Positions 12,736-56,541 are shown, counted from the stretch's first letter. The stretch is 64,000 nucleotides of DNA from Selaginella moellendorffii (GCF_000143415.4 NW_003314375.1:248001-312000), one strand, 5' to 3'. The notes: generated by a model from the letters alone, not told the origin. Translations and numbers: made by a program.

Positions 12736-12741
<6 letters not shown>

Positions 12742-12766: not shown

Positions 12767-12817
12767 TACTAAATAATAATAATTGTTATACTATGTTATA
12801 TTGTTTTAAAATTATTA

Positions 12818-16080: not shown

Positions 16081-16187
16081 GAATCAAAGAAAAGATGGCT
16101 TCTATATGTATATGTATAAGTATAAACTTTTGTGTTTCTTATTAATAATAGCTGGGTTTATAAAAAGGTGGTACTTGGCTGGGTGCA

Positions 16188-19700: not shown

Positions 19701-19717
19701 TCGCTCTTTTTTTTTAT

Positions 19718-23772: not shown

Positions 23773-25146
23773 ATGCTAGGTTTTAGGCGCTCCGGCGATC
23801 GGTTCCAATGCGGCAAGGATTCCTCCATCCAGCAGCAGCTGCCGCGGTTGGGATCCACCTCGAACGAATGGACGCTGGCGAGCTCCGATTCTCGCAGAAT
23901 GAAGAAGGTTCTCGTCTCCGGCTTGCCCGACTTTCTCGATTCGGGTAAGTCCTCGCGCTAGCGATCTCTTCCGCACGGATATTTCGATCGATCGCCTCAA
24001 AAATCTCGCGTCTTTGCTCGCAGAGGGCCTGTTTTGCTTCTTCGAGCAGAATTTCGGCCCGGTCTTGGATGCTGTCGTGCTCCCATTCCATTCCGCCGAT
24101 GGCCAGCGAGGAAGATTTGGCGTCGTCACATTCAAGAACAAGAACGCGTTCCTCGAAGCTATCCGGATGAAGAGCGGCTACATCTTTGGGAAGAAGGTAC
24201 GCAGTCGAGTGAAATATGTCTCGAGCAAGCTTGATTCCTTTTCCATGCCTGCCAGGCGATGATCGACATCGTGGAGGCTCGCGTTTCCAGGGACTTGCTG
24301 CCACCAGCTGACGAGAATTCCAAGAGACAGTTTGGAGAAGACGCTCCTCCGGCAAGCCTCATGCATTCTCCTTCGCTTCCTCCCTGGGCTCAGAGGTTCC
24401 GGGACTGGCTGCCGGGTTTTCTAGCCGAGGTTTCCAAGCGTCTGGCGAAAGGCGAAGCTTATCCTCTTTGCTCGCTGAAAGGCGACTTCCGGGCAACTTG
24501 TGGGCTGGAGATGGATCACGCGTCACTTGGTTTCGAGAAACTGAGAGACTTCATCCGTGCGTGGCCAGAAATCTGTGAGCCGAAGCTTGTGCCAGTGGGA
24601 TCGGGCCCAGCGACACACATTGTTCTCGAGCGAGTGATGCCAGACACAGCAACAGAGATCCAGCAGCGGGAGCCGACTTTCGGATTGGGACCACAGACAC
24701 GCAGTGAGAGTGTGTTGCCAGCTACCGAGACTGTGATCCAGCAGCCAGACCCGGGGCCGTCACAGCCACCTCAAGCTCCACCAAGCGATGTTGTCCAGGG
24801 ATCGTTACTCAGCCGCAACGTTCTCCAGGATCTGTACAACGAGAACATCCCGACACTCCGCCGCAACGTGCTTCAGGATCTGCACAACGTGGAGAACGTC
24901 CCACCACCACCACCCAGCACCGGTACGATGCGCAACGTCTTTGACAACGTCGAGCACAACACTCTACCACCGAGCACCGGTGTACTGTGCAACATTTGCA
25001 AGGAGGAAGCGCTGTGGTCCGGCATTCCGTGCAGGCATCTTGTGCTCTGTGACTCCTGCAAGAAGTGCCTCGACAAGTGTGGTCAGACCCGGGGGATGTT
25101 TTGCCCCGTGTGCCATGATCCGGTCGAAAGCATGGTAAGCTTGTAA
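23773..25146 (+). CDS. RRM + OST-HTH/LOTUS + RING protein, copy 2 (3 exons)
   Basis: Paralog of 5961-7157 with the same intron positions, a longer linker with internal repeats, and CNIC...PCRHLVLCDSC...CPVC. Confidence 0.85.
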
Positions 25147-28221: not shown

Positions 28222-31200
28222 TGTGAGGGCCAAATGTACGGTTACGATGCCATATATTAATATTAGCATAATGGGATTTTGGTAGCCATCGAATTGGTTT
28301 CAATTCGGACCACTCACTCTTGTGTATAAGCTAAGGTTTTTAGGTTAATTGATATGCACATTTTTTATATTCCCTTTCTATATTCCAAGCACTTACATTG
28401 GTGGAGGTGAGAGGCACCTTTGATTGTCCTTGAAAAGTGCTTGAATTTGGGATTTTGGTTTAGATCTAACTTCTGTATCATTTAAATCTAGTTTTTTCCA
28501 TTTCTTCTCTTTTGTTCTTCCCTTTCAGGATTTTGGTTTAAATCTAACTTTTTGCATTGTCTAGATCTCCCATTTCCTTCTCACTTTTTGTCGTTTCTCT
28601 TCTTTTGCTCTTTCTTCGTCCCTTTTCATAGCAGATCAGCAATCTCCTCCTTTGACTTTGGAGCAACAATTGATACAATTGCTTGATGCTATGCATTTGC
28701 AATTGACTAACCAAACTTAGTTGATAGCGGCGTTCATGGCACATGGTACAATTCCTCCTGCTCTTGGTGCTAATCCTCGCATTCAGCCGGAGTTCTTTCG
28801 CGGGAATCCTGGGGATGATGTGTACTATTGGTTCGATTACTTCACGGTGATTGCCACATATCATTCTTGGGATGATGTTTGACGTTTGCATGAGTTTCCC
28901 ACGTGTCTCCAAGGGACGGCATTGCAATAGTACAATGGTCTAAGCACAGCCACTCGTGGGGATTAGAGTGTTCTCCTGGATGTCTTCAAACGTGCTTTTG
29001 AACATGCCGACGACTATGATGATGCCTTCCAACAATTGCATCGTCTTTGCCAATGTCCATTTGAGTCGGTGATGCAATTTGGCATTTGTTTCCGAAGTCT
29101 TTTGCTTCGTGCGGAGCCAAATATGTCGAAGCGGATCAAATTAAGAATGTTATGGCTAGCACTTCATCAAGATTTTGTCGAACTTGTGCATGCACTTGCT
29201 CCTGTGACCCTTGATGATGCCCTTTGCCTGGCACAATGTTATGAGACATCGCTTCTTCCACTTCTTGCTGCCCGTCCTTCACCTCCCCTTCCTGTGGGTG
29301 ATGGTCCTATTCCAATGGAGGTTGATGCTGCTGCTGCTCGAGTCCAAGGACAAGGGCGAGGACGTGGTTGTGGCCGTGATGTTTGCTGCTGGGCGTGTGA
29401 TGAAGTTAGTCATACTTATTAGCGCTGTCGGCGTTTTCCGGATTGGCGACCTCCATTTCTTGGGTGGAGACCTTAGCATTAGCAATGTCCTGTTGGTGCT
29501 GCTGCAGTGGAAGGTTTGGACACTGAGATGCATCCGAGAAATGAGGAGTTGCACAAGTAACAAAGGAACTTTGCGCGAATAAGTCAATGACCCCTCCATC
29601 TTTCTTTCGGGAGTATCATCAAAGGGTTCACTCGGCACCGGTTCATCCAGTGTTTACTTTCCAAACTCATTTATATAACAAGAGGTCTCTTATTATTCTC
29701 TCCGTGTTAGTTGATACAAGTTCGAGTTTATCTTCTATTGCTCAACTTATTGCCACACATTGCCATCTACACTTACATTGTGTGATGGAACCAGTTTTCA
29801 TTCTTTATGGCAACGGCCGTACACATGCATGTGCACGGGATGAGGCGGACCTGGTTGTGTGTGTAGGCAATCTTGAGCTTGAGTTGTAGTCATTACGGGT
29901 GGTGCTGAGTCAAGCTTTTGACCTCATTCTTGGTATGGATTAATTGCAGCACAATCATGCTAAGTGTGACTTTGAGGCTTCTCCCCTTTGTCTCATACTT
30001 CCTTATGCTTCATCCATTCCTTTCACTTTTATACCTCTTCATCCCTCTATTTCTACCTCTGCTTCCATTACTTTTGTTCCCCCACTATTTCCTCCTATGT
30101 TTTCGTCTTGTTTTGCTCTTCCCTTTTTCAATCCCTTCGACAGTCTTTGTGTTGTAGCATTTGACCAGCTCATGAAAGAGTATTCTGATCTCTTTGAATT
30201 TGACCTATCGTATGAGGCCAAAATTGCCACACATCATCCGATTCCAACCAAGGATGCTTGTCCAATCAAGGTTCTTGTTCGTCATCGGTCACCTAAGGAA
30301 ATCAAGATTTTACATACTAACGTCAAAGAGATGTTGGAGAAGGGTGTTATTCAGAAGTTATGGAGTCCTTGGGCATGTGAACCTCATCTTGTGACAAAGT
30401 CTGATGGGAGTATTCGTTTCTGCATCGACTATCATCCGTTAAACAAAGTGACGATCCCAGATGTGTACCCTCTTCCTCACACTGCTGATCTTTTGGATCG
30501 TCTAAGGCGAAGTCGTTAGCTCACCAAGCTAGATCTTGCTTCTGGGTACTGGCAAGTACCTATGGCCGAAGAAGATATTCCCAAGACTGCTTTTTGTACA
30601 CCGTTTAATTTGTACGAGTTCTTGGTGATGTCGTTTGGTTTGAATAATACTTCAGCAACTTTCCAACAGATGATGGACGAGGTCCTTTGCGATATGCCAA
30701 AGGTCACTGTTGACTTCATTGATGATGTCTTGATCCACTCGGAGGGGACATGAGAGGAGCACGTTCATGATGTTTGTAAAGTGTTGGATCAACTATGCGA
30801 CGTTAGTTTAAAGTTGAAGCAATCAAAGTGCATGTTTGGGTCTAAGGACACAACTTATCTTATGTACCATATTTCTCATAAGGGTTTGTAAGTTGATCCT
30901 GACAAACTTGTGACTATTCTAAAGTTCCCTACTCTGAAGTGTGTGAATGATGTGCAGCACTTCTTGGGCAAGGTGTAGTATCTCGGTCATTTTGTGGATC
31001 ATCTTTCTGATCGCACTGCACCAATGCGAGCGTTGTTGAAGTCATAACGTCATCTTTCATCTAGTCTCCAAATTGTGAGCGGACGTTCGTGGATCTCAAA
31101 GAGCTATTAACGACTCTTCTAGTTTTGGCATATTCTGACTACACTCGACCTTTTATTTTGCTCATGGATGTTTCTGACATTGGTCTTGGAGGTGTGTTGA

Positions 31201-33293
31201 TACAAGAGAGCTCAAGTGTGCCTGGACAGCACCATCCCATTGCGTATATAAGCCGTACATTACAACTAGTGGAGATGAACTACTCCATGATAGAGAAGGA
31301 GTATTTAGTAGCAATCTAGGGTTTCGAGAAACTTCATGCATATCTATATGGTTCTTGAACGTTACTTGAAGGTGATTATGCTGCTGTTACTTCATTATTG
31401 AAGTGGAAGAACCTCACGGCCCACCCTTTTTGAAGTTATCACCTTCAACTAGGGTATTTGTTCCCCCGACTTGCCAACCTCACTTGGGGTTGGTCGTACT
31501 GCTTGATGGGCTTTGAAGCTTCAAATATATGATTTTGATGTTGTTCATCGCCCAGGGAGTTTTATGGCTGATGCTAATGCCCTTTCTCGAGCTCCTTTTC
31601 CTTCTCCACTCTTTTCTCAAGTATATTATTCCAACCTCTATGGATTTTCTAGACAAGGATTTTGTGCCATCAGCAATTGCTATATTTGACGTTCAATGTC
31701 CACAAGGTGCAGAGCAAGATCTACCTTCTCTTGATGAGGTTCGTGAGGCTTAAAAGATTGAGCCGTGGATTCGAAGGCTTCGAGATGGGTTTGAGAATCC
31801 TGCATCACTTGCTAATGATTTGCCTTTCCGGCATTTACATTCTCAATATCACCTTGAAGATGGCCTTCTTTATTTTGTGGGGATGAATCCTAATGATCAT
31901 TTACAACTGGTGGTGCCTTCTATCTTTATTCTGCGGTTTTTCCATGCCTACCATGATTCTCCTGTTCTAGGTGGGCATATGGGACATTGTCGTGTAACCG
32001 AGAAGCTTCATAGGTCTTTCTATTGGCCGAAGATGCGACGTGATATTATCCAGTATGTACGTAGCTGTGTTTGGTGCCAAGCTCGTAATGCTCCCCCTCG
32101 GGCTATGGAAGGACGGTTGAAGTCAATTGCAGTTTCCTATTTGTTTGAATTGGTGGTGTTTGATTTTATGGGACTTTTTCTACGGTCGACTGCTGGCAAT
32201 GAGTATGTTATTATTGCTTCTGACTACTTGACTCGTTGGGTGCAAATTGGTGCTCTTGTTAGTGCCTCTGCAACTGCTGTTGGATACTTCCTCCTCAATC
32301 GAGTGGTGTTCCAGCATTCTTTTCTAGAGCGGATTCTTTCAAATAATGGTCCCGCATTTATGGCTAAGGCATTTCATGTTTTGACATCTCAATTAGGGAT
32401 ATGCCACACTTTTAGGAGTGCTTATCATCCACAATCAGACGGTCTAGTGAAACGGCTCATTCAGACATTCAAAGGGATGATTGTGAAGTATGTGAACTTT
32501 TAGCATTCGGATTGGGATGGCTATTTGTCATCTCTTCGGTATGCGTATGTCACAGGGGTTCAGAGTTCTGTTGGTGCTTCACCATATAAACTCCTATATG
32601 GTCATGATCCAATATTACCAACAAAGCTGGGTTTACCTTCGTGATTGCCACGAGTTGCCGATGCTAAGTTGTGGGATCAATATTTGATAAGCATTCTTCC
32701 ACTTGTCCAAGCAGAGTCTGCCGAACACTTAGGCCCCGTACAAGTGGGACAACAACAGTGCTACAACTCCCATTATCGTCCACCTGCGGAGTACAAAGTG
32801 GATGATTTGGTGTTAATCCGTTTTCCCCATCTTACGGTACGTGGTTTATCTAAGGGGCTCCTTGTGCAGTGGAAAGGACTGTATCGTGTGTTATGGCGAG
32901 TTGGACCACAAGTTTATGAAGTTCGGCATGACGTTCAACAGGTTGATCCTCCAGAGATTGTGCATGTGCAGCGGTTTAAACTCTTCTTACAAAGGGATCT
33001 AGAGCAGTTAATACCACCTACAGATCCGCCGATGCCTCCTCTTGACATTCCTCCAGATCCCGGCCTATATACAAGAAAACCCTGATGGTCTTCCATTATT
33101 TCGAGAGGAGGGGTTGATGTGATGGCCAAATGTATAGCTATGATGCCATATACTAATATTAGCGTAATGTGATTTTGGTAGCCGTCGGATTGGTTTCAAT
33201 CCGGACCACTCACTCCTGTATATAAGTTAGGATTTTTGGGCTAATTGATATGTACATTTTCTGCATTCCCTTTCCATATTCCAAGCATTCACA
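28222..33293 (+). mobile_element. Full-length degenerate Ty3/gypsy LTR retrotransposon (about 5.07 kb)
   Basis: 176-bp LTRs 28222-28397 and 33118-33293 (TG...CA); PBS-like TGGTGGAGGTG; PPT GAGAGGAGGGG. Gag PIPMEVD plus CWACDEVSH knuckle, protease VLVDTS, RT DLASGYWQV and FIDD, RNase H DVSDIGLGGVL, integrase HDS..GGH..CVWC, DFMG and YHPQSDG, in RT-RH-IN order with many stops. Confidence 0.95.
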
Positions 33294-34269
33294 TTTTGAA
33301 ATTTATTCTATTGATATGTAATAAGATTAATTTTGTATTTAAAAATTATAAATATGTTTATATGGATATGGGAATAGGTATATTAATTACATAAGAATGA
33401 ATGGACTAGATTCTGTCCCAAATGGATGGTTTACTATAGTACTGTAATTAGCATGTTATTCTTGTTGTGTTACAAAAACTTGAAGTTCCCACAAAATTAT
33501 TAATGTAGTTATTGACAACCATAACTGAAAGAAGTCTAAAGTTATGATATATAAACATTAGTCAATTACAAAATCTTGATGAACCATTTACAACTCTGTA
33601 TGCAATTACAAAATATTCAAACCAACTTTTAAGTGATAACTTTAAACCAAAGAAAAAGACTTTTTTAAAAGCCACTACAATCTATTAAAGTCATTGCAAT
33701 AAATAATACATCCCATTTTTAAGTTTGTTTATTTATAATCCTTTAAGACCACTATTAATTAAGACTCATGACTATAAATAAAAGTTACCTCCATGCTTTC
33801 CTTTCAATCAACATCTGGGATTTGTGTTAACTTTGGCTTATGATTTTTTATTCTTGTCCTCAAACATGGACAGTCAAACTCACTTCATTCATCTTTCACA
33901 TCCTTCTAAAATTTTGTAAACCATGTTTCCACACAAGATCTCACTCCTATAGTCAAATGTTAAATTAAAAATATATTTTTCTAATATACTAATTATATAC
34001 TTATTCACATATGCACCTTCTACAGGCCCTATTGGTAAGAGGAAATAAATATAGGAGATTTGACTAAATGTTTTTATTCCATATTCATTCTTAAGAACAT
34101 ATGACTTGCCATACTTGAAAAGCAGAGCCACCTAATTATGTCATAAAGATGCCTAGATTAATCTAAAATGACTAACAAATGTTAGAATATTTTAAAATAT
34201 TTTAAATATATTACCATAATAAGTTTAGTTAAGCAAACAAAAAACTAATAACACAAAGTTTGTAAATTT

Positions 34270-35090
34270 GATTCTCCAATTTTGAGGTTGGAGCAAATGT
34301 ATGCAGACTCTTCTTCCAAATGACCACAATACTCCCATTTCTTCTCCACCAGATTAGAACACAAAATTACCCATACAGCTGGAGACAACGATCACATCAT
34401 CCACAAGATGAGCCATCCATTCTTCACCTCCCATGTTGATATCACGAGGTGGCCACTCGTATTTCCCGGATGCGACCATGGCTGAGTGTGAGCCATCCTC
34501 ATCCGTCTCTAGCCAGCACGCTTGTACCAGTAAAATCCTCACACAATACCTCCCAGTAGGCGAATGGATCCTGGCTCACCACTTGCCGACTCCATTGCAT
34601 GGTGTTCAGATCATAGAAGCGATCCTCTCCCTCACTGTAGCCAGGATTGGACAAGTCGTGGATTCCCCCAGCTTCCGGAGCCAGAATTGTACCGGAGAAG
34701 GTAGACAACAAACTCCCGAAACACTCCCTACCATCACTGTCTTGGTGTTGAGCACGGCAATCCGATAAATCCCTGTCTCAGGATCCACATATCGTCTCAA
34801 TGCTATCAACTTCCTCAACAGAGCATCTTCCAAACTGTTTGTGAGCGGATTGCCCACAGCCAGAGACCGTGAGCGAGCACTTCTCCATTCCGGCCACCCA
34901 TCCATTTGCCGTGAAATGGCTCGCAAACATTGTAGACAGGCGGGCGAGAGGCAGAGAAGTGGGCTCGAACGGTCCCAGAGAACATACAAAAGAATGCAGT
35001 ACCAGGAGCGGCGCCACCACTCGCATCCACATCGAGTCGCAGGAAGATGCTCATGAACAATTCCTGGTACGCCTGCTTCATCAAGTTATC
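34270..35090 (-). pseudogene. F-box family pseudogene
   Basis: ELFMSIFLRLDV, FTANGWV, SRSLAVGNPLTNS, DPETGIYRIAVLN, FYDLNTMQW, EEWMAHLVDDVIVVSS across several frames. Confidence 0.75.
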
Positions 35091-35782
35091 TATCTAATAT
35101 AGCTGACAACAGAATACGGCCCTGTTGGTTCGATCACTCGACTTTTGGGGCACAAATCACGTTGACGCTGCCACGTCATTCTACGGACGATAGTGACTCG
35201 GGCAGTGATGTGGATTAGAAGGCGATCGCGAAGAAGATGTCGTCCTCGCCAGATAGCACTGCCTTGAACACCAACAGGTGACACATGTAGCTTCATGGAC
35301 ACCTGCTGTGTTTATACATGGGCTGATGGCAGCGCATGCACTTCCTTATCACTTTCATCGACCTCATCATTCTGAGCTTTGATTGGATCTTAGATGTTTG
35401 TTGTGATAAGCTGGAACTTTTACTCTGTGAGTTGTGTTTATACGGTTGCTGTTCTTGCTGTCCAGATCTGCGAGCTTGCGCATCCTATATGGAGCTGCAT
35501 CCCTCGTTTGTTCATCTTATTGTAGGCTCGACCTGGTTGGGAGTCTCACTGACAGAGCAAAGAAACTGTAAACTAAGAGCGCAAGATTCCCAGCGCTTAC
35601 TTGATTGCTCTTTCCACTTTGGTTCTCAACAAATTGTTGCTGTTTTTATTTCCTGATACACGCATGGGAGTCTAGAACCTCGGATAGCAAAGAAACGACC
35701 GAAGAATAGTTTGTCTTCCAAGCTCAGACATACCGTCCTATATATATATTTCTAGTTTTTCTTGAGAAGATTTAAAGTGCGC

Positions 35783-36166
35783 TTAGCAACCAGTGACATA
35801 ATCCGCCTTGAACTGGCAGCCGTCATTGTAAGTCTTGATACCACACTTGGCACAGTTGCGAGCACGGAGTTCGTCAAAGGCAGTGATCATCTCGGAGCCA
35901 TTGAGGTCGCAGTTGGAGCCAGAGACAAAGAGGCCACAGTGGCCGGAGCAGACGCTGCTGGAGCCTTTGTTGCTGCCGATGAAGTAGCGGTTGCTAGGCT
36001 GAATCTGGCGGCAAGCAGCATCACAGTCGCTCTGTGCGAGGTCCCTGCACAGTGTAGAGCCAGCGCACGAGTAGGAGTCCTGAGCATGACAGCCCCGCAA
36101 CAACATGATGATCATGACATTCACAAGTAAGACATTGAGAGCTAGCGCCATGTTCATCGACTTCAT
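35783..36166 (-). CDS. Secreted KP4 killer-toxin-like protein, copy A (intronless, 127 aa)
   Basis: Signal peptide, then SCAGSTLC...GSEMITAFDELRARNCAKCG...FKADYVTGC, paralleling KP4 NCRGSSQC...GTEACRHLTNLVNHGCRVCG...LTVNYVNSC (KP4 sequence recalled from memory). Carries 11 mature Cys. Confidence 0.8.
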   Translation of the reverse strand: MKSMNMALALNVLLVNVMIIMLLRGCHAQDSYSCAGSTLCRDLAQSDCDAACRQIQPSNRYFIGSNKGSSSVCSGHCGLFVSGSNCDLNGSEMITAFDELRARNCAKCGIKTYNDGCQFKADYVTGC

Positions 36167-36420
36167 GGTTACTAAGTTACTATGTATCTCCAATTTGCAC
36201 GAGTAGCTAACATAAAGCTCAGCCCCTGGTTTGGATATAAGAGATCTAAGGGAGGAGATGCAAGGCAAAAAGAGCAAATGTGAGTCATTAATGCAAGTAA
36301 CAAACTAATATTGATATTAGTTATTTTCCTACAGAACAATTTTGAAAATTTCACATTTAATAGCACATAAACCCAATCCCCACATTAAAATCTAACAAGT
36401 AAAAGTATAACACATCGGAT

Positions 36421-36458
<38 letters not shown>
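36421..36458 (+). repeat. (CT)n microsatellite
   Basis: Visible dinucleotide run. Confidence 0.9.
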
Positions 36459-36461
<3 letters not shown>

Positions 36462-36597
36462 ATTCACATAAGCGGCAAAGAAATAGTTATTAGAGAAAGT
36501 CCACAAGCACATGAGAGGAAGGATCAAATGTGGCAAGAAAGACAAACCGGGAGACCATTTAAATACGAAAGATTCGGTTTGGGCGAGTCGCATAGCA

Positions 36598-39141
36598 ATG
36601 GCCAGCATTGTGGCTGGAACTTTTCATCAGGCTACTCCAAATCTCTCCCCTGTAGCAACAAAGGCATGTCAAGGTATGAATTGCATACTCAATCATGGAA
36701 TTGTAGCTCAACATAGCTGCAGCATCATCGTCATATGGACCTGTGCCAGTTACTGGAAATGGAGCACTTGCTACACGAAAGGTGTGATGTATGACTCTTA
36801 GCAGTTCGTAAATCTTCGCTTTTGATCAAGGTTCCCCCTTTTCTCAAAAGCTTGTTCCACACTAGTAGAAACAAGTTTCTTGATGTGCTTGTGGATGCTC
36901 TATACAAACCAGATAAGGAACGGAATATTTATTACCAGGTAAGATACTGAAAACTTTCGCAGATATTTTCTGAATAAATTCCTTCTAGGAAAACTTTTCA
37001 CCCGTGGAAGAGGTGGGATCTTGGACACCAGTTCAAGTTATTGATGGAGAAATACCTCAGGATTTCCCAGCAGGAACTTACATAAGAAACGGTGCGTTTA
37101 AAGAAATGGTGTTTTGGCAGTGGTTTTGCTCATGATTTTGTGTTCTGAATTCATTGGTTCTATTAATTTTCTTTTTTCTACCTTTAAATCAGGTCCAAAC
37201 CCTTACCTCCTTGATGAAAGTATTCTCATAAGTCCTTTTGGGAAACTGTATTGTCACTGGTTTGAAGGTGATGGAATGCTTCATGCGACCAGGTTTGATC
37301 AAGGTGGCAAGTTCATCACATATAAGAACAAATATGTTGATACTATGGCACACAAAATCGAAAAGAACACGAAGAAAACCTCATTCCTAAGAGCTGTGGA
37401 GGGAGATTCTTTGGCTATCTCAGCAAGTTATCTTCTAAACTTCGTAAGGCAATTGCATTTATTTTGTTTTATTTTCCTTAGCTACAATGTGCAGCTACGT
37501 TTTGGGAAAGTTAATGGGCCAACATGCAATACGCACGTTTTCAAGCTTGCTGGGAAGTTGTATGCAGTCGCAGAAGCAGATATTCCTCATGAAATAGATT
37601 TATCAAGCCTCAACACTCTTGGCACTCTTGATTTTAGTGGTAAATGGAAAGGACCGTTCACATCTCACTCCAAGGTATGGTTGATCACAAAGTGACGCTA
37701 TTATTGAATTGTGTTCTTCTACTTTAAGTTTGATCTGGAAAAGCAAGAGCTCGTTATCTTTGGTTTCAATGCAAAGTCGCCATACTTGCAAATTGGAATC
37801 GTTTCCAGTAAGTGACTGTATCAAAACACAAACTTCTGCTCACTCTTTTCATCCAGAGGATGGAGACTTGATACAAAAGACAGATCTGGAGCTTGATCGT
37901 GCATGCTTTATTCACGAGATTTCAATAACGAAAAAGTAAGTAGCATTTCATTCATGAATCGAGTTCTGGATTCTCGTGTGAGTTCTTTTCCAGTTACACC
38001 TTGATTCCTGATTTTCCACTCACGATCAACATGAACCGATTGCTGAAAGGATCAGGAAGGTAGTTGTCATGTTGTGTTTTAAGGCTTTTAATCTGAGCCC
38101 ATGTCTCAGGCTGGTCGAGTTTGAGAACAACTCTTCTTCCAGAATAGGAGTTATGCCTCGTTATGGCGATTCTAAGTCAGTAAGGTGGTTCGAAGTAGAG
38201 CCTGGATACAGCTTCCACGCTGTAAATGCCTTTGAAGACAGTGATGAAGTAAGTAAACTTCAGCTAAAAAGGAATTTCAAAAAATTGTTTTGCTAACTAA
38301 ATATTATCATGTGATAAACAGATTGTGTTGCATGCTTTGTTTTCGAAGATTCCATTCTTTCCCACGCCAAATGGTGTGGACAGACGCGAGTGGTTTGCTC
38401 GGGGCATAACACCGACTGATCCAAGAAATGCCAGAGACCCTCAAGTTGATGGTGCCCTCTTGGCCAATTTGCGGGAATGGAGATTCAATCTTGACAAAGG
38501 TTTCGTTTGTTTCTATAGAGTGAACTGAGTTTTGGTTTATGAGTTTGCTGAGCAGGGACGGTGGTGGAAAGGAACTTGACATCGTTGGAAACTTGTGGAA
38601 TCGAAATGCCAAAAATCAACAAGAAATTTACAGGAAGGAAGAACCAATTTGCCTATGCCCAGGTGGTGGATGTGGAGGCTAGCAAAGTTGTAGGTAAGTT
38701 TCAATGCGTTTTTTTGCTCATGTACTTAAGATTTGCTGTTTACAGGCATGCCAAAGTATGGCAAGTTCATGAAAGTAAAACTTCCGGAATCTTGTGAAGT
38801 ACGCCATTGCGAGTTATCAATCAGCTAATTGTTATATCTCTGTAGGATGAAATTGATGTGAAGTACCACGATCTGGGAGCCAACCGATACGGATCGGAGC
38901 CTTTGTTTGTGGCGAGACCCCACTCAACAGATGAAGACGACGGGTGGATTGTGAGCTATGTCCATGACGAGGAGACAAACAAATCCGAAGTGAGTGCATA
39001 CTGTAAGAGAGTTGGCAAGTGTAAAATTTGTACTTGCAGGTGTACATATTTGATGCACAAAAGTTTCAGGATCAAGCTGTAGCAAGAATTGGTCTCCCCC
39101 AGCGAGTACCTTATGGATTCCACAGTGACTTCTTCTTTTGA
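36598..39141 (+). CDS. Carotenoid cleavage dioxygenase-like protein (RPE65/CCO family), multi-exon
   Basis: ENFSPVEE, GEIPQDFPAGTYIRNGPNP, HWFEGDGMLHA, four Fe-binding His (FTSHSK, FIHE, SFHAVN, YGFH), EMPKIN, GSEPLFVAR...EDDGWIV, LPQRVPYGFH. The 5' exon structure is tentative. Confidence 0.9.
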
Positions 39142-39214
39142 AACTAGAAAAATGGAAAGTAGACGATAAATCACGTGCCAACTTGAGGCTAGTCAACGAT
39201 TGCAAACGTGGTCG

Positions 39215-39991
39215 TCAACTAGGAAGTATTATTGGGGAGCCAGCGTACATGGCAATCGTTGCCACTCGCGCAAGCACCATGAAATATCGACTGCTGATAC
39301 CTCGGGCGTGTTCTATAGTGATCTCACCCCCGACCACCTGGGCCCGCTCTCGAAACTGGGCCTTTCCACTCCTCCGGTGGCACTCCATCAGCAGCTTCTT
39401 AGCGGTGCTCATCGCATACTCCCAGCAGTTCTTGTCGTGAAGGCTATACTGCGGGTCGTGATCCTCATGAGCTCGCGCAGTTCCAGCGGCGTATCCTCGC
39501 AATCGAAATTCAGCAGCTTGGCATTGGTAAAATCGCCCAGGCTGAGAACGGGGGTGATGTTGATCCCGCAGTCACCGCCAGGGCCACACTTCTCGAAAAG
39601 GAAGAATTGCTCCACGCCCCCGACGATCAGCACAATCACCAGGAAGTCGTGGTTGATGGTCGACTTTGGATTGATGCAGTTAGTGCTGGAATCCCTGGAG
39701 GCGGTGGAGAGGGCGGCTGTTGCTTTGCTGCCGCCCTGCAAAGCCCTTGGTGAAGCTCCTGGTGAAGCCGTTTGTGAGGCCGGATTGGCAGTAGACGATG
39801 GCGCGGAGGAGCGACGTCAACGTAGCCATCGGGATCATTGTGCTTGAAGTGGTTTCTGATCTTGCCTGGAATTTTGGCTGACGAGAGACCACTCCAGAGC
39901 TGTGGAGCAGCCTTTTGCTGCCATCGTTCAAGACCGGCGCAACATGAGTCGATCTAGAGCTCTTGGCCACCGACTGGGAGATTTTCCACAT
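39215..39991 (-). pseudogene. Frameshifted permuted papain-like (PPPDE/LRAT-type H...NC) gene
   Basis: Three successive frames; INHDFLVIV...FFLFEK followed later by QYSLHDKNCWEYA (Y.L...NC motif); intronless. Confidence 0.5.
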
Positions 39992-40649
39992 TGTTGGAGA
40001 TGGAGCAAAAAAAAGCTCAGGAGCTCTTCATTCATTCTTTTGATCTTGTTCTTCATAATCCCCGGCACGGATTCCATGATCGTGCCAAGAAACTTCCAAT
40101 TGATCAATAGACACAACAGTACAAGAATAATTTGGGTATAAATTATAAACTTGTTTATAATTCAAAAATACAAGTTTAATCTAAATATATATCAACCGTT
40201 AGATAAAATATATTAGAAGCATCTTAAACAAAACAGTTTTACATAAATGTAAGTAAAATTATACTTTTAAAAATTCATCTAAGTCAACAACTAAGACACA
40301 AAATTAAGTGAGAAAGGAAAAGAATGACAATCATTGAGTGACATCTGGGTCGACAGCCAGCTAGAACATGCCGAACCTGTCGTATGCCACCTCCACCAGC
40401 TCTGCTCCAACCAAATATTATGATCAAAATGAGATTGGGCCATCGGCCTGATGGACGCAATGGCTCAGGTTTTACACTCGGTCAATTGGGCCATGTCGAT
40501 CAAGCTTGATATATGTTAACAACCAAAGAGCAAAGTTTAACAAAGAAAAATGGACTTTCAATAAAATACAGCTGAAGCCTTCTATATACATGGCGGGATC
40601 TTTCTTCTACGTGTCCATCTATGCGAACAAGTCGCCGTCTAAACAAGTT

Positions 40650-41390
40650 GTGACCTGTAAAGCAAGGTTAGACACGCTTCTCTGGGCAGGGCCATGCAAT
40701 TATAAATGGGTTCCTCCTTGACCGCCTAAGTTTTGGAAGTCTTGCTGGGAGCAAAGCTATAGACCCGCTTCTGTGCCCGCCCACACCATATAAATAATGG
40801 GCTCGAGATCGTAACTGCAAGGCAAATCCTTATGAACCGGGAGCAAAACGTTATTGTAACTGCAGCACAACTTAGTGGTGTGAAGAGAATGTTGCCCACA
40901 CAAACACTTGATATGCACTATGGTTGATGTTGGACACAACTTGTAACTTGGGTCACTAGTACACATGCATAAAAGAATAGTGGTGGTAGCTATATTACCA
41001 AAGCTGCCACATGTTTTCTGGATGAGCCAGATCATGCCATGTGGCACCCAATTTAATTTATTTTACTATTATAGTAATGTTAATAATAGATGTGGACCTC
41101 ACACATGGATATATAATATTAATGCGGGATCATGTTGGTATTGCGACAATTAAGTCGTGACAGTCACTGTCTGGACAGGTGACCAGTGGAGCAAAGCTAG
41201 ACACGTTTTTCTGGGTAGGATCACGATCACAATGGGGGGTTTAATATTGTGTCAATACAGCAGTTCTCCTTGACCACCTAAGTTTGGGTTCTTCCTTCTT
41301 GACCGCCTAAGTTTGTGTTGGAAGTCAGGCTGGGAGCAAAGTTAGACACGCTTCTGTGCCTTCCCATATAAATAAGGGGTTCGATATCTA
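40650..41390 (+). promoter_or_regulatory. Tandemly duplicated promoter module of KP4-like copy B with W-boxes and TATA
   Basis: TTGACC at 40718, 41270 and 41299 (plus GGTCAA at 40480); TATAAATA at 40789 and 41367; block 40650-40810 is repeated at 41180-41390. Confidence 0.65.
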
Positions 41391-41409
41391 TCTCAGCAAC
41401 TTAGCAACC

Positions 41410-41790
41410 ATGAAGTCGACGAACATGGCGCTAGCTCTCACATATGTTTTGCTTGTTGTGAATCTCATGTTGTTGCGGGGCTCTCATGCTCAGGACTCCT
41501 ACTCGTGTGCTGGCTCTACATTGTGCAGGGGCCTCGCACAGAGCGACTGTGATGCTGCTCGCCGCCAGATTCAGCCTGGCAACCGCTACTTCACTGGCGG
41601 CAACAAAGGCTCCACAGGCGTCTGCTCCGGCCACTGTGGGCTCTTTGTCTCCGGCTCCAACTGCGACCTCACTGGCAATGAGATGATCACTGCCTTCAAC
41701 GAACTCCGTGCTCGCAACTGCGCCAAGTGTGGTATCAAGACTTACAATGACGGCTGCAAGTTCAAGGCGGATTATGTCAATGGCTGCTAA
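41410..41790 (+). CDS. Secreted KP4 killer-toxin-like protein, copy B (intronless, 126 aa)
   Basis: MKSTNMALALTYVLLVVNLMLLRGSHA|QDSYSCAGSTLC...LRARNCAKCG...FKADYVNGC; 10 mature Cys; close paralog of copy A including the 3' UTR. Confidence 0.82.
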   Translation: MKSTNMALALTYVLLVVNLMLLRGSHAQDSYSCAGSTLCRGLAQSDCDAARRQIQPGNRYFTGGNKGSTGVCSGHCGLFVSGSNCDLTGNEMITAFNELRARNCAKCGIKTYNDGCKFKADYVNGC

Positions 41791-42785
41791 TCACACTTTC
41801 TTGTAGTTAATCTTCTCAATAAAGCTATGACGGTATGTCTGGGTTTGGAAGATGATGATTCTTCGGTCGTTTGTTTGCTATCCGAAGTTGTAGGCAAGAA
41901 AAGTGGAAACAAATCAACAATTAAAAAGCAAAACAATTTGATGTGAAAGGTTGATTTGCCATTCCTTTCAGCATCATGAGCTTGGCTTTGGACTCAAGCT
42001 GCTCTTTTCTTTGTATTGGAGCGTCTTTATGTAATTTCTTTTGCTTAGTTTTCTTCAACAATAGGAAAATGAGATGATTGCTAAGCTTGCAAGTTCTGAG
42101 AGGTCGTGTTTGGGGAGATTACACAACAGCCTGATGATCAGTATGAGCAAGATTTTGAAAAATTTAGGCAGAATAAAAGTATCTAACTCTCACTTGTCCC
42201 TTGGCATGATGTCTCATGATGCTCCAGTTGTTCCATCCTTTAGTCTTCTCTTGGCTATACTCAACATGAAGATGACTCTACTCTGTTGCATCTTCCTTTC
42301 TTGCTTGGCTTTTTGAGTTTTGCAGCAATTTCTTCATGTCAATTCATAGAAAGGATAGTAACTTAATTTCAATAAATAGCTTACAAGTAGTTTTTAAGCA
42401 AAACTAGGATGATAGTGAATATACCTAAAATATGCTTGGATATTTTAGGATATTCTACCATTTAACAGTTGTTATTCATTTAGATTAATTTTGTATTTAT
42501 AATTATAAACATGTTTATAATTTATAAACTTTCTTAAACCCTTTCTAATATATTCTTTTTTATTCTATTATATACAATAAGATTAATTTTGTGTTTATAA
42601 ATTACAAACATGCATATAAATTATAAATTTTATTTGATTAATTGAATTAATAAATCGGAATAACACTACTATTAAGCAAACCAAGCGTTACTACATGCAA
42701 TTATTATTAAACATCATGGTTTATTAAAACAAAGAAATTTTCCCGCGCTTTAGGGTTTAACATTGCATTTTTAGGGCTAGGGCTA

Positions 42786-43771
42786 AGATATCTTCGATCG
42801 GCTCGGGGAGGACTTGCTGATGGAAATTCTTACGCGGCTAGACACTGATTGTGTGCCGTGGATCCAAATCCACAGCTGTGGCGCCCTTTCTCCGGCGAGG
42901 CTGTCAAGCTCAAGCACATTTCTCTGCCCATTGGCCCGCCTGGAAAGAGCTCCGTCTTTGTAGGGCATTGCTCGTCCAATGGTCTAGTGTGTGGCACGCT
43001 TGCTGTAATACACCGTCCCACCAGTCCTTGCTCACGGTCTCTCAGTGTGGCCAATCCTCTTACGAACACTTGGAAGGTGCTCCGGTGTACCGAGTGGGTC
43101 GAGATGACCGAGACAATGGATTTGGATCCTGAGACGGGAATCTATCGAATTGCAGTGCTCAACAACAAGCGTATCGATTCAAAATACGTTGGCGAAATTC
43201 TCCAGTGCAACTCTGGCACTGGACGCTGGGTGGCAGGGGACGTCATAACAAGTGATCTGATAGAGTGCAACCCTGGCTACAACCGAGGTAACGGTGACGA
43301 TGGTTTCTACAACCTGGATACACTCAAATGGACGACTGAGTTCACAGAAGAGAATCCCAGCATTCGTGAGATCGATGACGAGACTTGCAAGAATTGGCCT
43401 ATCTGGGGATTTTTGTACCGCGGCCGGAGGATCCTGGTGGGAACGATCCATGACGACCTTCACGTTGCACTCAGTGTGCTGGAGGACGACGAGCAAAAAC
43501 GTTGGCTCCCCTTGTCCAAGGGTCGTGTGCGGGATATAGTCGGGGAAGGATGGCGTGTGATCACTGGGTGGCACATCTAGCAGGCGACGTGATAGTGCTC
43601 TCCAGCTGCACTTGGCCTCCACTTGCGTTTCATCTGATCGACGAGCAATGGGAATTGGGCCTTTCGGAACAGGAACTGGCATTCTATGCTAACCTCGACT
43701 GGTCCAAAGGCTGTCCGGCCACCATTCGCGCCAGCTACACGTTTGTTCCAAGCTTAGCAGCACGGCCATAA
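42786..43771 (+). pseudogene. F-box family gene, the most complete copy, with two frame breaks
   Basis: DIFDRLGEDLLMEILTRL (F-box start), frame change near 42850, 243-aa ORF with SSNGLVC and VANPLTNTWKVL, frame change near 43550, ending YTFVPSLAARP. Confidence 0.75.
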
Positions 43772-43862
43772 ATCTCCCTGTTGGACTCAAGATCAGCAAG
43801 AGAAAAGAAACAAGAAAATGTACCTTTCGCTCAAGTTGGTATATCTGTAAATCAGGCTCCTG

Positions 43863-44561
43863 TTAGTTCATATCCAGATCTGGTGTCTTAGCTGTTCCAA
43901 GTAAGCATTTGATGGCTGGAACTGAGGGATGTTCGCGTCCTGCGTTGGACTGTAAGATAAAGCCAACAAATGAAGAACTTACAACAGAGGCTGGCGGCAG
44001 CGTTGGAGCAACTTGTTGCTCAAGCTCGTCCGGCCTTTCCCACTGTAGAGAGATATTAAAATGCGCCTAAATCTAAATCTTAACGTTGTTACCTTGCTTT
44101 CGGATGTGATACTGTTGTAATAGTATTTATATCCATCTGGCGAGACGTGTTCCGTCCAGTTAGATGTAGCTGGCGCTACTACAGCAGGAGGCAATGCCGG
44201 AGTTGGAAGCAAAGATTGCACAAGCTGTGTAGGCGCCGACAACAACCAAGAAGGCGGCTAAGTAAAATGAGAAAGGAAGAATTTTTAAGAGAAAAAAATT
44301 CAGAAGCACGAAATACCTGTTGTGCAATGCTCCCTGGCTGGAACACCTGTAACAAAATCCAATCCAGACATGAAGCACAAAATGCAGAAGGAGAGCGTAC
44401 CGGTGGATGCTGTTGTTGCTGCGGAATATTTTGCAAGTGAAGAGCTTGATGGTTGTGTAAAATGAGTGACGGTTGGTTTATGGATGCCAGGGGTTGCGTC
44501 AGCTGTAAAAATTGTGATTGTTGCGATGGTTGTGGATTAAACTGCTGAGGTTGGAGATGAA

Positions 44562-44594
<33 letters not shown>

Positions 44595-47060
44595 GTAGTT
44601 GCACATACTGATGCACAGCTTGTTGTCCAGCAAAATTTTGTCCAGCACGCTGCAATGCCGTTTGGATAATCTCCTGCAAAGATTTAAAAAAAAATTGGCA
44701 TAAGTAAACAAAGAGGTGGAAAGAACCTCGGTCGGAAGTCCAGCTGCATGATGCCGTTGAGCCTGTACAATGTATGGGCCTTGCGAGTGGTTAGGAGATG
44801 CCTGGAAGAAATTGACCGTGTCAATATAAAAGAATAACCAAAGAGCAGGAACATACTGTTTGTGAAGGGCTTAGACAGGGAATTACTGCTGGAGGAAATG
44901 GAGGTTGTCCAGTTTGATGCAGTTGCCGCAAACTCAATGCATTTGCTTGCCTCCAGCTAACTGGAGAAGCACGTCCACTGTGGCCACTAGATCTGAGAGC
45001 AAACATGTCAGTAGCGCTGGTAATCTCAATAAGGATCACCTGTTGTTAGAGCCGGATCCGTGATGGCGGGGACTAAAACTGTTCCTGTAAAACACTCTCA
45101 CGGTTGAGGTTATCTTGCAGAAAATATATCAAGTAAAAGAAAAGAAGACCTCGAGTCACCAGTTTTAGGCCGTTTTGGGTCAGCAAATCTCACAGCCAAA
45201 GGCTGATCACAACCCTGTCATACAAAAATGAAGGAACAAGTTAAGAAAAAAGGAAAAGCGAAAATCAGAGTCACTCACGCGCATAATGTACACATCGTTA
45301 AGAGCAGCAATGGCTGCTTGTGCCATGTCCCTTGACGGGTACTTTATGAAAGCACAACCTGCAAACAAACGTCACTTGAAGTACTCCCTGCAATGCAGGC
45401 GCTTTACCTCTGCTTTGTTTGTGCTCGTCTCTCATGACGTATATATCGTCAACTCTTCCGTACGGACTAAAAACCTGCACTTGAAAGCCATCAATAGGAC
45501 ACCAGAGACAACGATAAACAATTTTACCTCTTCAATTTCTCTCTCACTAGCGTGCTTGTTTAAGCATCCTACAAACAATTTATGCTCTATTGCCCCTGCT
45601 AAAAAATATAAAGAAAATGGAAGTTGAGAGAAATGAAAGAGATAAAAAACGTCCTCACCTAAGCGCTCTCTTTCACCATCTGCGTATCTAACTTGTACAG
45701 GCGAAGCTCCCTGTCCAGCGTAAACAATCAAACCATCAACTAGAAAAACGGCCAAAATCTTACTCCTGGTAAAGTCCGCTGGTTGTTTAAGCAACGTATA
45801 GCTCGGTCAGCTTCGTCCCTCGAGGAGTACTTGACGAAACAACAACCTATACGGCATAAAAAGTAGAACAGAAACACAAATTAGCGACTATACTCGAGAA
45901 AAAACTAAAACAGAGAATGAAAGGAAACAAAAAAAAAAAAAAAAAAAAACAACAACAACAACACAAGCATCGTGCCCGCCCGGATATACTGCGGAACAGA
46001 TTGCATCCACCATCAAAACTAGTCCGCCACCATTTTGGTTTTCGTTCTCAAGCCATTCATCCTCGGTCTCCAGTCCATGTCAGAGTCACAACCAGAGTTT
46101 TTGTTGATCCCTGTAAGTGGGAACTTAACCCACAGCATTCATCTCCAAAGTTGTTCCGAGTTTCAAGTTTGGATCCAGTCATCACTAAGAACGAGTAGTG
46201 GCCATCGATTGGATAGTTGCCACCAGTTTCCAAGGAAGAGTATCATGAACTAATTCCCGGTGAAGCATATCTGTTTGTCGCGGATCATCAACGGACGGGC
46301 AGTGCTGTAGTGTCTGATATCCATATATCCACTCAAAAATCCATTCACATGATGTCATACGTTTTCTTGCTGGAACATTCACCTAAGCCAGAGTTAAATT
46401 ACCATATGGAAAAGAGAGAATAAAAGACGGAACGATGATCCTAACGATGCAATGCAAGCAAACAAAGAACAAAAAAGTCTGTCCTCGATCGAACCAGGAA
46501 AAATAAATCCAGACATTCCAACCGTGCAGCACAATCTATCCAAAGCTTTGGACCACCGCAACACACCACCTAGAAGGAAAGCAAGCCAACAGTAAACCCA
46601 ACAAAGATTCGATTATGGGAAAAAGAGAAGATACAACAAAACATGCCTTGTTGGTGCCCCGTTCTCCTATCCTTTATAATCGCAACCTCAAGAACTTCTC
46701 CATATTCCTCGAACATTGATCTTACCTGACAAGAAAAAGAATGCGCAGAGGGAAGCGAACGAAACGAGTTAAAAAAAAAAAGCAAGAATTTGCAGACTGA
46801 GAACGCACTTGTTGTTCAGTAATTGTCCTGGGAACAGAGCCCACAAAGAGTTTCACATAAGTGTGTTGTCCTCCTTCACTAGAATCTGGACAAGAAGAAT
46901 ATTTCGATTCATAGTACGAATGAATTGAAATGCGGCAATACGAGAAGAAGAGCAGAAATCACTCACCAGAATTGTCGCGCTCGCGCTTGTGGCCAGCAAC
47001 GCGCCAAGAACTGCTGCTGGGATCTCCGTGATGAGGCATTTTCTTCCTCTCCGAGACCAT
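43863..47060 (-). CDS. FCA: Flowering time control protein FCA-like (2 RRM + Q-rich + WW)
   Basis: KLFVGSVPRT, IKDRRTGHQQ|GCCFVKY, PVQVRYADGERERL, EHKLFVGCLNK, LAVRFADPKRPK, WTEHVSPDGYKYYYNSITSESK|WERP. The last exon is tentative. Confidence 0.93.
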
Positions 47061-47283: not shown

Positions 47284-48060
47284 TTAAAAAAGTATTTCGA
47301 AATCAGGTTTAGGGTTTATGGCGTTTAATTTTATGACTTTTAGGGTTTTCGGATGAATTTCCGTTGGGAGTTGAAGGTTCGCGTGGCGGTACATGCGCTC
47401 TTCATGCTCAGCATCTTCGACATCTACTTCAAGTCGCCGATCGTTTATGGGATTGATCCCGTCGCGCCTCGGATCCAAGCGCCTGCCGTGCTGTTTGTCG
47501 GTAATTCCCTTCCCTGCTAGATTTTCACGGATTGATTGAAATATTAGATCTATTAGCTGATCCCAGGAGCTCATTTTCTACACAATGTGATGCACGGGGC
47601 GTGTTCTTGAGTTTTCTCATTTGTTTTTGCGGGCAGGGATGTGATGCTTCGGTCCTCGTTTCGTCAACTCCTGGCAACAAGGCTGAAAGAGACGATGAGA
47701 TAAATCACTCATTAGCCGGAGACGCCTTTGATGCAGTTCATCGAGCCGGTGTGGCGCCTGCGCTGATATTCTCGCTATCATCACGTGGAGAAAGAAGGAT
47801 GTAGCGAGGAGCTTAGAAAGCACTGCGAGGATTACCAGATAGTGCCATCAGCGATTTCATTGAGGGAAACAGCATGGTTAATTCGTTGATAGATGCTTTG
47901 TAAGTGTGAAGATGGCGGCCGACCCAGAAAACCTTCCATCTTTACGGCCTTTCCTGACTTCCCGGAAAGGACCGCCAACTAGCCAGTGATCTACAACTTC
48001 ATCATGAACCGGAGCTTCCTCGGCGAACTAACATGGTACCCTTCCAGTTCGACATTAGTT
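47284..48060 (+). pseudogene. Deleted duplicate fragments of PIG-N exons 1-2 and of the class III peroxidase
   Basis: 47383-47600 copies 49644-49935 with deletions; 47605-47790 copies 53762-53972; 47987-48055 copies pieces of 54257-54403. Confidence 0.85.
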
Positions 48061-48479: not shown

Positions 48480-49480
48480 AAAAGCTCGTCCGGCTTTTCC
48501 CACTGTAGAGAGAAACTTGAATGCGCTTCACATCTAAATCTTAACGTTATTACCTTGCTTTTTCGGATGTGATACTGTTGTAATGGTATTTATATCCCTC
48601 AGGCGAGACGTGCTCCGTCGAGTTAGATGTTGTTGCTACAGCAGGAGGCAATACTGGGGTTGGATCCAAAGATTGCACAAGCTTTGTAGGCGCCGGCTAA
48701 GAGAACGAGAAAGCTTTTTTAAGAGAAAAGAAAAAGAAATATACCTGTTGTGCAATGCTCCCTGGATGGAATACCTGTAGCGAAATCCAATTGAGACATG
48801 AAGCACAAAATGCAAAAGGACAGCGTACCGGTGGATGCTGTTGTTGCTGCGGAATGTTTTGCAAGCGAAGAGCTTGATGCTTGTGTAAGATGAGTGACGG
48901 TTGGTTTACTGATGCTATGGGTTTCGTCAACTGTGAAAATTGTGATTGTTGCGATGGTTGCGACTGTTGCTGCTGCTGCTGCTGCTGGAGTAGGCAACAT
49001 ATACTGATGCACAGCTTGTTGTCTAGCAAGATTTTGTCCAGCACGCTGCAGTGCCGTTTGAATAATCTCCTGCAAAGACTTAAACACATTGGCAAAAGTA
49101 AACGAAAAAGAGGTCGAAAGAACCTCGGTCGGAAGTCCAGCTACATGATGCCGTTGAGCTTGTACAATATAACAAAAATGAAGGAATACGAACCTAAGAA
49201 AAAAAGGAAAAGCGAAAATCAGAGTGACTTACGCACATATAATGTACGTTACGAGCAGCAATGGCTGCTTGTGCTATATCCCTTGCAAACAAACGTTGAA
49301 GTACTCTCTAAAATGCAAGCGCTTTACCTCTGCTTTGTTTGAGCTCGTATCTTTTCCGTACGGACTAAGAACCTGCGGTTGAAAGCCAGAGACAACGATA
49401 AACTCTTTCAATTTCTCTCTGATTAGCGTGCTTGTTTAGGCATCCAACAAAAAATTTATGCTCTATTGCCCCTGCTAAAA
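48480..49480 (-). pseudogene. Deleted duplicate of FCA (WW, Q-rich and RRM2 exons with introns)
   Basis: Colinear, intron-containing match to 44023-45603 with many deletions and frameshifts. Confidence 0.9.
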
Positions 49481-49607
49481 TAGTCCCAGAAAATGGGAAA
49501 ATAACGTCCAGAAGAGAAGACCCACCGGCTACTGCCGGTCAAAACGGAAAAGTACGCGAATTTTAAAAAAGTATTTCGAAATCAGGTTTAGGGTTTATGC
49601 CGAGAGA

Positions 49608-54687: not shown

Positions 54688-56541
<1,854 letters not shown>

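Follow-up and report, generated by a model that had tools for sequence, protein, structure and literature searches.

The DNA analysed here is a 64,000-nucleotide (nt) stretch of the genome of Selaginella moellendorffii (GCF_000143415.4 NW_003314375.1:248001-312000), hereafter the window, with positions counted from its first letter. It contains two short, intronless genes, copy A and copy B, that encode cysteine-rich proteins with a predicted signal peptide. An earlier note, made from the sequence alone, had described them as an inverted pair of genes resembling the KP4 killer toxin, acquired horizontally by a probable lycophyte. The host is indeed a lycophyte, and we are highly confident that the two genes are a genuine part of its genome and belong to the MU117 family (Pfam PF15474). 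The genes, their parts and the duplicated DNA around them are as follows:

35783-36166, minus strand: copy A, intronless coding sequence (CDS) of 127 amino acids (aa) from the first ATG, plus stop
36083-36166, minus strand: predicted signal peptide of copy A
35786-36082, minus strand: mature domain of copy A
41410-41790, plus strand: copy B, intronless CDS of 126 aa from the first ATG, plus stop
41410-41490, plus strand: predicted signal peptide of copy B
41491-41787, plus strand: mature domain of copy B (99 aa, ten Cys)
35672-36181, no strand assigned: left arm of the inverted duplication, with the copy A CDS, ~110 nt of 3' flank and ~15 nt of 5' leader
41395-41893, no strand assigned: right arm of the inverted duplication (copy B)
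34741-34881, no strand assigned: remnant of the duplicated 3' flank, ~0.9 kb downstream of copy A; its inverted partner is 43023-43169
43023-43169, no strand assigned: remnant of the duplicated 3' flank, ~1.2 kb downstream of copy B
41367-41374, plus strand: TATA-box-like motif read from the sequence, 36-43 nt upstream of the copy B start codon
41818-41823, plus strand: predicted AATAAA polyadenylation-signal-like hexamer, 28 nt past the copy B stop

Both coding sequences come from a scan for open reading frames (ORFs) and are free of internal stops. The outer bounds given in the earlier note, 35783 and 41790, are exactly the ends set by the two stop codons. The genes stand head to head, with start codons 5.2 kb apart, and their products are 82% identical (E 1e-72). 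Each N-terminus has one basic residue, a 15-residue hydrophobic core (mean hydropathy 2.5-2.6) and small residues at -3 and -1, followed by Q-D-S-Y-S-C; the AlphaFold model of copy B has a helix at residues 5-21, predicted with low confidence. The ten Cys of copy B all fall within the mature domain. Of the 12 in copy A, one belongs to the signal segment, and the other 11, which are the ten family Cys and one extra, are in the mature domain. The scan and the hydropathy values therefore agree with the earlier description of two intronless, divergent, Cys-rich ORFs of about 126 aa with signal-like N-termini, and with its count of ten Cys in copy B.

Both proteins match the Pfam MU117 profile over its full length (positions 1-105 of 105), with 62.8 bits for copy A and 65.9 bits for copy B. 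The gathering cut-offs are 30.4 bits for MU117 and 27.8 bits for Kp4 (PF09044), the Pfam family of the KP4 toxin. MU117 is named after fission-yeast Mug117, and the name denotes only meiotic up-regulation. Profile comparison thus returned MU117 for both copies in place of the Kp4 family suggested by the earlier note.

The connection to KP4 appears in the fold. An AlphaFold model of copy B, built with 29 plant relatives, has a mean predicted local distance difference test (pLDDT) score of 84.8, with values of 85-97 per ten-residue block in the mature domain. When this model was compared with the PDB using Foldseek, the top match was KP4 itself (1kpt_A; E 1.8e-4, probability 1.00), aligned over 105 of 105 residues at 21% identity, with a template-modelling (TM) score of 0.60 by query and 0.70 by target. 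The structural match anticipated by the earlier note is therefore the best one found. The second match was Zt-KP4 (8acx; probability 0.84-0.93, TM 0.45-0.53, identity 8-12%). At the sequence level, Kp4 matches below threshold occur in seven of the 29 plant relatives; they reach 14-20 bits, with a best E of 7.5e-4, and are collinear with most of the profile. The plant profile retrieved 94 fungal relatives, of which 15 match Kp4 (best 3.4e-8) and 85 match MU117. Most plant and fungal relatives have ten Cys in the 99 aligned columns, a number that, purely as a count, is compatible with the five disulfides of the KP4 type.

KP4-fold proteins have been sorted into four structural groups, with UmV-KP4, the Fusarium KP4-like proteins and moss KP4 (all Pfam Kp4) in Group 1 and PF15474 representatives in Group 3 (PMC12382754). 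The modelled fold, together with the place of PF15474 in Group 3, makes the window proteins predicted members of the KP4 structural superfamily. Hence, "KP4-like" is right for the fold and for remote homology, but wrong as a family assignment. The same applies to the sequence anchors that the earlier note had aligned with KP4. They are real, and the columns C33, G35, S36, C39, C104, C107, G108, Y122, V123 and the terminal Cys are nearly or fully invariant among the 29 plant relatives; however, their correspondence to KP4 is confined to the fold, with no KP4 sequence match.

The pair was duplicated within the Selaginella lineage. The inverted arms are 86% identical over 513 nt, with a 353-nt core at 90%, and the two remnants of 3' flank are 74% identical over 148 nt. 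A counterpart of these remnants also lies downstream of a third Selaginella locus, where a single MU117 copy adjoins a purple acid phosphatase gene (GL377712.1). Among the three loci, flank similarity covers ~480 nt downstream of copy A, ~115 nt upstream and 100 nt downstream of copy B, and more distant remnants. Since the similarity reaches into the flanks, these were segmental duplications at the DNA level. Synonymous divergence (dS) is 0.16 between copies A and B, 0.08-0.10 between copy A and the third locus, and 0.17 between copy B and the third locus; the low values mean that the duplications are recent relative to the family, with copy A closest to the third locus.

A second scaffold, GL377687.1 (459 kb), is collinear with positions 31.5-47.9 kb of the window at 96.3-96.8% identity, and is taken as the other assembled haplotype. 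Its gene order is that of the window: MU117 (minus strand), dioxygenase (plus), MU117 (plus), RRM/WW (minus). Gene and flanks were thus duplicated, and inverted around an unrelated dioxygenase gene, before the two assembled haplotypes split. The local amplification proposed earlier is confirmed by the two copies here and the third locus elsewhere. All five S. moellendorffii copies are intact, and a product identical to that of copy B is annotated on GL377679.1, the scaffold to which the window belongs. The ratio of nonsynonymous to synonymous divergence (dN/dS) among the local paralogues is about 0.24-0.67 from few changes, which indicates moderate constraint.

The two copies differ in how closely they follow the family. 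At 52 columns that are at least 90% conserved, copy B has no departures; copy A has four, all in one loop, as well as its odd extra Cys. The TATA-like motif of copy B falls within the ~115-nt upstream stretch common to the third locus. Copy A has no counterpart of the motif, and its similarity to the upstream region ends ~25 nt before the ATG. Copy B is the canonical paralogue, and copy A is a diverged paralogue without the shared promoter. There is no called gene on record for the copy A product on the window scaffold; the allele on the second scaffold, which differs by one codon, is called as a gene, and the frame and the ten family Cys of copy A are intact on both haplotypes.

The relatives of these genes are found in land plants and fungi. 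A word-indexed search returned 29 proteins, all PF15474 and none assigned to a named non-plant organism. They come from S. moellendorffii (95% and 88%), Artemisia, three Orobanche species, Apium, Cuscuta, Ranunculus, Adiantum, Marchantia, Riccia, Sphagnum and Ceratodon, and cluster look-ups add Euphorbia, Rhodiola, Tanacetum and Orobanche minor. The clade therefore spans liverworts, mosses, ferns and scattered eudicots, including parasitic plants. Across the lycophyte, liverworts, fern and eudicots, mature domains are 83-92% identical, and dN/dS against other plant lineages is 0.03-0.15, indicating strong constraint. All plant genes examined are single-exon. A profile search of 1.84 billion representatives, made with neither a word index nor a length window, yielded just 139 matches, and 18 of 18 named non-plant clusters were fungal, from ascomycetes and basidiomycetes. 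Some of the fungal relatives are long proteins in which GH18 chitinases, GH71 or chitin-binding modules carry the domain at their C-terminal end. Among 2.9 million viral contigs scanned with family patterns, there were 60 pattern matches and no confirmed relatives.

The closest sequences of non-plant type are two contigs from read-run assemblies, P0028 and P0030. Each encodes a signal peptide and a pro-peptide with a dibasic end immediately before the residue that matches the plant mature start, an arrangement typical of fungal secreted proteins. We built the phylogeny with fungal and plant homologues proposed in the earlier note as a neighbour-joining (NJ) tree, by a distance method, from 99 mature-domain columns. 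The plant sequences and P0028/P0030 are split from 39 fungal sequences with a bootstrap of 59%, and the plant clade is nested among fungi. Identity is 57-95% within the plant clade and 25-50% among fungal members, many of which are domain fusions. We consider a fungal origin of the plant MU117 genes probable. The transfer was likely old, because synonymous sites are saturated between Selaginella and liverworts and between one liverwort and another. The earlier proposal of horizontal acquisition is thus upheld in part: all named non-plant relatives are fungal, which makes a transfer likely, but the event was not specific to lycophytes, since the same clade occurs in liverworts, mosses, ferns and scattered eudicots.

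Our overall interpretation, to which we give a probability of about 0.7, is that copies A and B are paralogous nuclear genes in a tight land-plant clade of the otherwise fungal MU117 family, a remote branch of the KP4 fold. An MU117 gene would have been acquired from a fungus in an ancient entry into plants. The signal peptide would be cleaved, and a compact, disulfide-locked protein would be exported to the apoplast, to act there on a conserved extracellular or membrane target in defence or signalling.

What might this protein do? By analogy with KP4-fold proteins, it could inhibit fungal growth, perturb Ca2+ fluxes, or both. We put forward such an antifungal or Ca2+-directed function only tentatively; a developmental or signalling role, like that reported in moss, would be the main functional alternative. 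Fusions of fungal members to wall-degrading enzymes point to action at the fungal cell surface. Furthermore, mature-domain conservation of 83-92% suggests a specific and strongly constrained target, and makes the protein a good candidate for a conserved component of apoplastic defence or signalling.

Several observations weigh against this interpretation. Neither copy matches Pfam Kp4, even at E<=10, and PDB sequence searches by single protein or by family profile retrieved neither KP4 nor any other true match. Hence, the relationship to KP4 rests on a predicted structure and a moderate TM-score. A Foldseek comparison with the viral structures of BFVD gave no meaningful match. The haplotype alleles of copy B have a dN/dS of 0.77 from nine changes, which is compatible with weak constraint. 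No expression evidence was found, in that the exact products occur in the genome assembly only and are absent from indexed read-run assemblies. A bootstrap of 0.59 on 99 columns by a distance method leaves the direction and number of transfers unsettled. Lastly, the searchable literature contains no PF15474 member with a demonstrated activity.

Two plant genes next to the pair bear on the alternatives:

36598-39141, plus strand: carotenoid cleavage dioxygenase gene (Pfam RPE65; 584-aa public model), multi-exon and enclosed between the copies, with bounds mapped from the public model on the second scaffold
43868-47060, minus strand: RRM/WW-domain gene (public model of 508-510 aa), the right-hand neighbour and a plant-gene anchor

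Could the pair be contaminating fungal DNA or an artefact of assembly? Apart from its plant clade the family is fungal, and the intronless genes have a GC content of 0.54-0.55 (0.68-0.70 at third codon positions, GC3) versus 0.40-0.48 in their surroundings. However, the 64-kb window contains no N, the copies enclose a multi-exon plant dioxygenase gene and are flanked by RRM/WW, DEAD-box and LOTUS-RING genes, and the gene order recurs at 96.5% identity on an independent scaffold of 459 kb. The window proteins also lack the fungal-type pro-peptide. Contamination or misassembly is very unlikely given the gap-free window and the identical layout on the second scaffold, as the earlier note had argued from the neighbouring plant genes, and we give this explanation almost no weight. 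An old native family is a better candidate, but still an improbable one. Such a family would have been present in the ancestor of fungi and plants, or born in plants and later passed to fungi, with repeated loss and no transfer from fungus to plant. This agrees with the broad distribution from liverworts to eudicots and with the weak support for deep nodes of the tree. It sits poorly with a profile search of 1.84 billion representatives that gave no named match beyond fungi and land plants, with a fungal diversity (25-50% identity, fusions) far deeper than that of plants (57-95%), with the intronless state of all plant genes examined, and with the nesting of the plant clade among fungi in the NJ tree. 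That one or both copies are silent relics, copy A above all as a decaying duplicate with an open frame, is unlikely but carries more weight than a native origin. Copy A has lost the shared upstream region and TATA box, departs at four of 52 conserved columns, carries an extra, unpaired Cys, lacks a gene call on the window scaffold, and has a dN/dS of 0.62-0.68 against its closest paralogue; no transcript-derived contigs were found for the local copies. Nonetheless, its frame and ten family Cys are intact on both haplotypes with a single allele difference, its changes are clustered in one loop and not scattered, and copy B is without sign of decay.

A further alternative is a recent acquisition from plant to plant, in which Selaginella or eudicot copies were exchanged as a cassette extending from promoter to 3' untranslated region (UTR) long after lycophytes and euphyllophytes split. 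We regard this as doubtful for the window, although the eudicot copies are not vertically inherited in look. A single cluster of at least 90% protein identity unites Ranunculus, Euphorbia, Apium, Tanacetum and Rhodiola, which represent five orders (Ranunculales, Saxifragales, Malpighiales, Apiales and Asterales), and three species of parasitic Orobanche as well as Cuscuta carry the family. The mature domains of Euphorbia and Apium are 99% identical, as are those of Ranunculus and Rhodiola. Four-fold sites among Artemisia, Euphorbia and Ranunculus are 74-84% identical versus 31-35% expected (P 1e-9 to 1e-11), and a dS of 0.23 separates Artemisia from Ranunculus. The alignment across these orders extends to about 90-110 nt of promoter and 60-270 nt of 3' flank, at 80-89%. 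For Selaginella, the mature domain of copy B is 91-92% identical to the eudicot copies, and its four-fold sites are 50-69% identical to theirs versus 39% expected (P ~0.01), compared with saturation against liverworts. However, the flanks of the Selaginella genes are unlike those of any eudicot locus and the CDS alone aligns, the synonymous signal comes from ~40 sites and could be inflated by shared codon preference, and three diverged loci on two haplotypes speak for long residence in Selaginella. Moreover, copy B is equally close (92%) to its homologue in the liverwort Riccia fluitans despite saturated synonymous sites, so extreme purifying selection alone can yield 92% identity. An ancient entry from fungi, followed by duplication within Selaginella, is the reading that we retain for the window, and the eudicot pattern, which hints at spread between plants, is a lead for that question and not a conclusion on the window.

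The aligned eudicot gene units are:

L004:7895-8662 and L004:10414-10918: Artemisia annua
L009:7931-8624: Ranunculus cassubicifolius
L011:7910-8470: Euphorbia peplus

These loci lie on chromosome-scale scaffolds, amid retroelement remains. The Ranunculus gene (L009:8001-8420) is directly 3' of LINE-like ORFs (long interspersed nuclear element; zf-RVT, RVT_3) on the same strand (L009:6611-7646, plus strand). A 200-nt segment beside the Artemisia gene (L004:8660-8888) is present in three copies around the Ranunculus gene. The gene may have travelled with a retroelement, but no shared element termini were found. A TATAAATAAGG-type motif, common to the promoters of Selaginella copy B, the third Selaginella locus (L003) and the eudicot genes, was rejected as evidence, being too short and too near the generic plant TATA consensus. 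A speculative scheme for the whole family, which we think is rather improbable, is that of a mobile cassette comprising core promoter, intronless CDS and short UTRs. Such a cassette would have passed from a fungus to early land plants and later between vascular plants, possibly via host-parasite contacts, with Orobanche and Cuscuta as carriers and the Selaginella copies near the lineage that seeded the eudicots.

How do the window proteins compare with better-known relatives of the fold? KP4 of Ustilago maydis virus P4 (1KPT, PF09044) is the top structural match and is of similar mature size (105 aa, versus 99 aa here). KP4 is secreted and has ten Cys, like the window proteins with their ten family Cys and signal-like N-termini, and UmV-KP4 blocks Ca2+ uptake. 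In contrast to KP4, which shows no sequence or profile match to them, the window genes are nuclear plant loci on two scaffolds and not part of a double-stranded RNA mycovirus. The fungal members of MU117 share the ten-Cys domain, which the window proteins match over the full profile. They are more diverse, and often have a pro-peptide or a fusion to a chitinase, GH71 or chitin-binding module, whereas the plant form consists of signal peptide and domain only.

The moss KP4 genes, such as PpKP4 of Physcomitrium patens, are likewise nuclear plant genes of the KP4 superfamily. They are held to derive from ascomycete fungi, and reportedly cluster with Fusarium KP4-like proteins. Fusarium KP4-like proteins affect wheat roots. 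The moss genes differ from those of the window in being Pfam Kp4 and Group 1, whereas the window proteins are PF15474 and Group 3 and have their nearest fungal relatives in PF15474. The window clade itself also occurs in mosses (Sphagnum, Ceratodon), as a lineage separate from moss KP4. Reportedly, PpKP4 alters Ca2+ gradients as well as protonemal development (PMC12382754).

Zt-KP4-1 of Zymoseptoria tritici (8ACX), with the ECP2/HCE2 effectors, resembles the window proteins in being small, secreted and Cys-rich, and is the second structural match. It differs in belonging to Group 2, with an HCE2 domain, and in its low TM-score of 0.45-0.53. Zt-KP4-1 has been shown to inhibit fungal growth, and the DUF26 domain, a native antifungal Cys-rich domain of plants, has been grouped with KP4-like plant proteins (PMC12382754). 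Ginkbilobin-2, a DUF26 protein (PF01657), has a distantly similar alpha/beta fold. However, the Foldseek match is weak (E 0.2-0.6, TM 0.3-0.4) and there is no Pfam match; the window genes are not members of that family.

The genes are already public as hypothetical proteins with an MU117 domain, and fungus-derived genes of the KP4 superfamily are a kind already known from mosses. To our knowledge, however, discussion of such genes in plants has been confined to mosses and to the Pfam Kp4 branch. The searchable literature has no account of the MU117 branch in plants, no mention of the Selaginella or Marchantia locus tags, and nothing that links "meiotically up-regulated" to horizontal transfer in plants; the "Pytheas" paper on transfer between Cuscuta and Orobanche is unrelated. 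The window thus adds a second KP4-fold branch, MU117, which became fixed in a vascular plant, where its gene was duplicated and has stayed intact. In eudicots the distribution is patchy, synonymous sites are unsaturated and promoters are shared; if this pattern holds true, it would be a clear case for studying the transfer of nuclear genes between plants. Were the mobile-cassette scheme correct, the Selaginella pair would be one stop of an unusually mobile and extremely conserved gene for a secreted protein.

Local duplication of MU117 genes recurs in other plants. Riccia fluitans has two copies ~6 kb apart (L005:8070-8367, plus strand; L005:14190-14486, minus strand), which are convergent, unlike the divergent pair of the window. 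Artemisia (L004) has a tandem pair, and Apium has a cluster (AgCh_040245/040248/040249). Long antisense ORFs run through both coding sequences of the window, at 35762-36130 (plus strand) and 41431-41634 (minus strand), and the public annotation of the second scaffold includes a 232-aa plus-strand model antisense to copy A. A hypothetical plus-strand read-through transcript, from antisense of copy A to sense of copy B, could fold as a 500-bp hairpin.

Among the neighbours, the exon ORF 37114-37695 of the dioxygenase gene, searched as a single exon, matches RPE65 with E 2.3e-26. A conserved linkage between MU117 and dioxygenase genes was considered and rejected; neither the third Selaginella locus nor the other plant loci fetched show it, which makes the adjacency incidental. 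A DEAD-box helicase ORF of 608 aa (DEAD and Helicase_C domains) at 54688-56514 (minus strand) is a further ordinary plant gene of the window. ORFs at 6447-7157 and 24259-25146 (both plus strand), ~18 kb apart, each combine OST-HTH/LOTUS with a C3HC4 RING finger and are probably paralogous. A tandemly duplicated segment (42847-44770 versus 48700-50700, 83-94% identity) extends into the 3' part of the RRM/WW gene, with the following repeats:

44313-44688 and 48741-49084: repeat pair of the RRM/WW-region duplication
45531-45620 and 49407-49496: repeat pair of the RRM/WW-region duplication
47383-47498 and 49644-49759: repeat pair of the RRM/WW-region duplication

Direct repeats of 178 nt at 28222-28399 and 33118-33295, 86% identical and 4.9 kb apart, probably mark a Ty3/gypsy-type long terminal repeat (LTR) retrotransposon, and an ORF with integrase domains lies between them (31820-32503). 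We rejected this element as the carrier of copy A, since copy A is not enclosed by the LTR pair and integrase ORF, which lie 2.5 kb away from it. Lastly, the stretch 12001-22000 is AT-rich, with a GC content of 0.30-0.39 versus 0.42-0.55 elsewhere in the window, and GC skew is strongly negative (-0.31) at 18001-20000.

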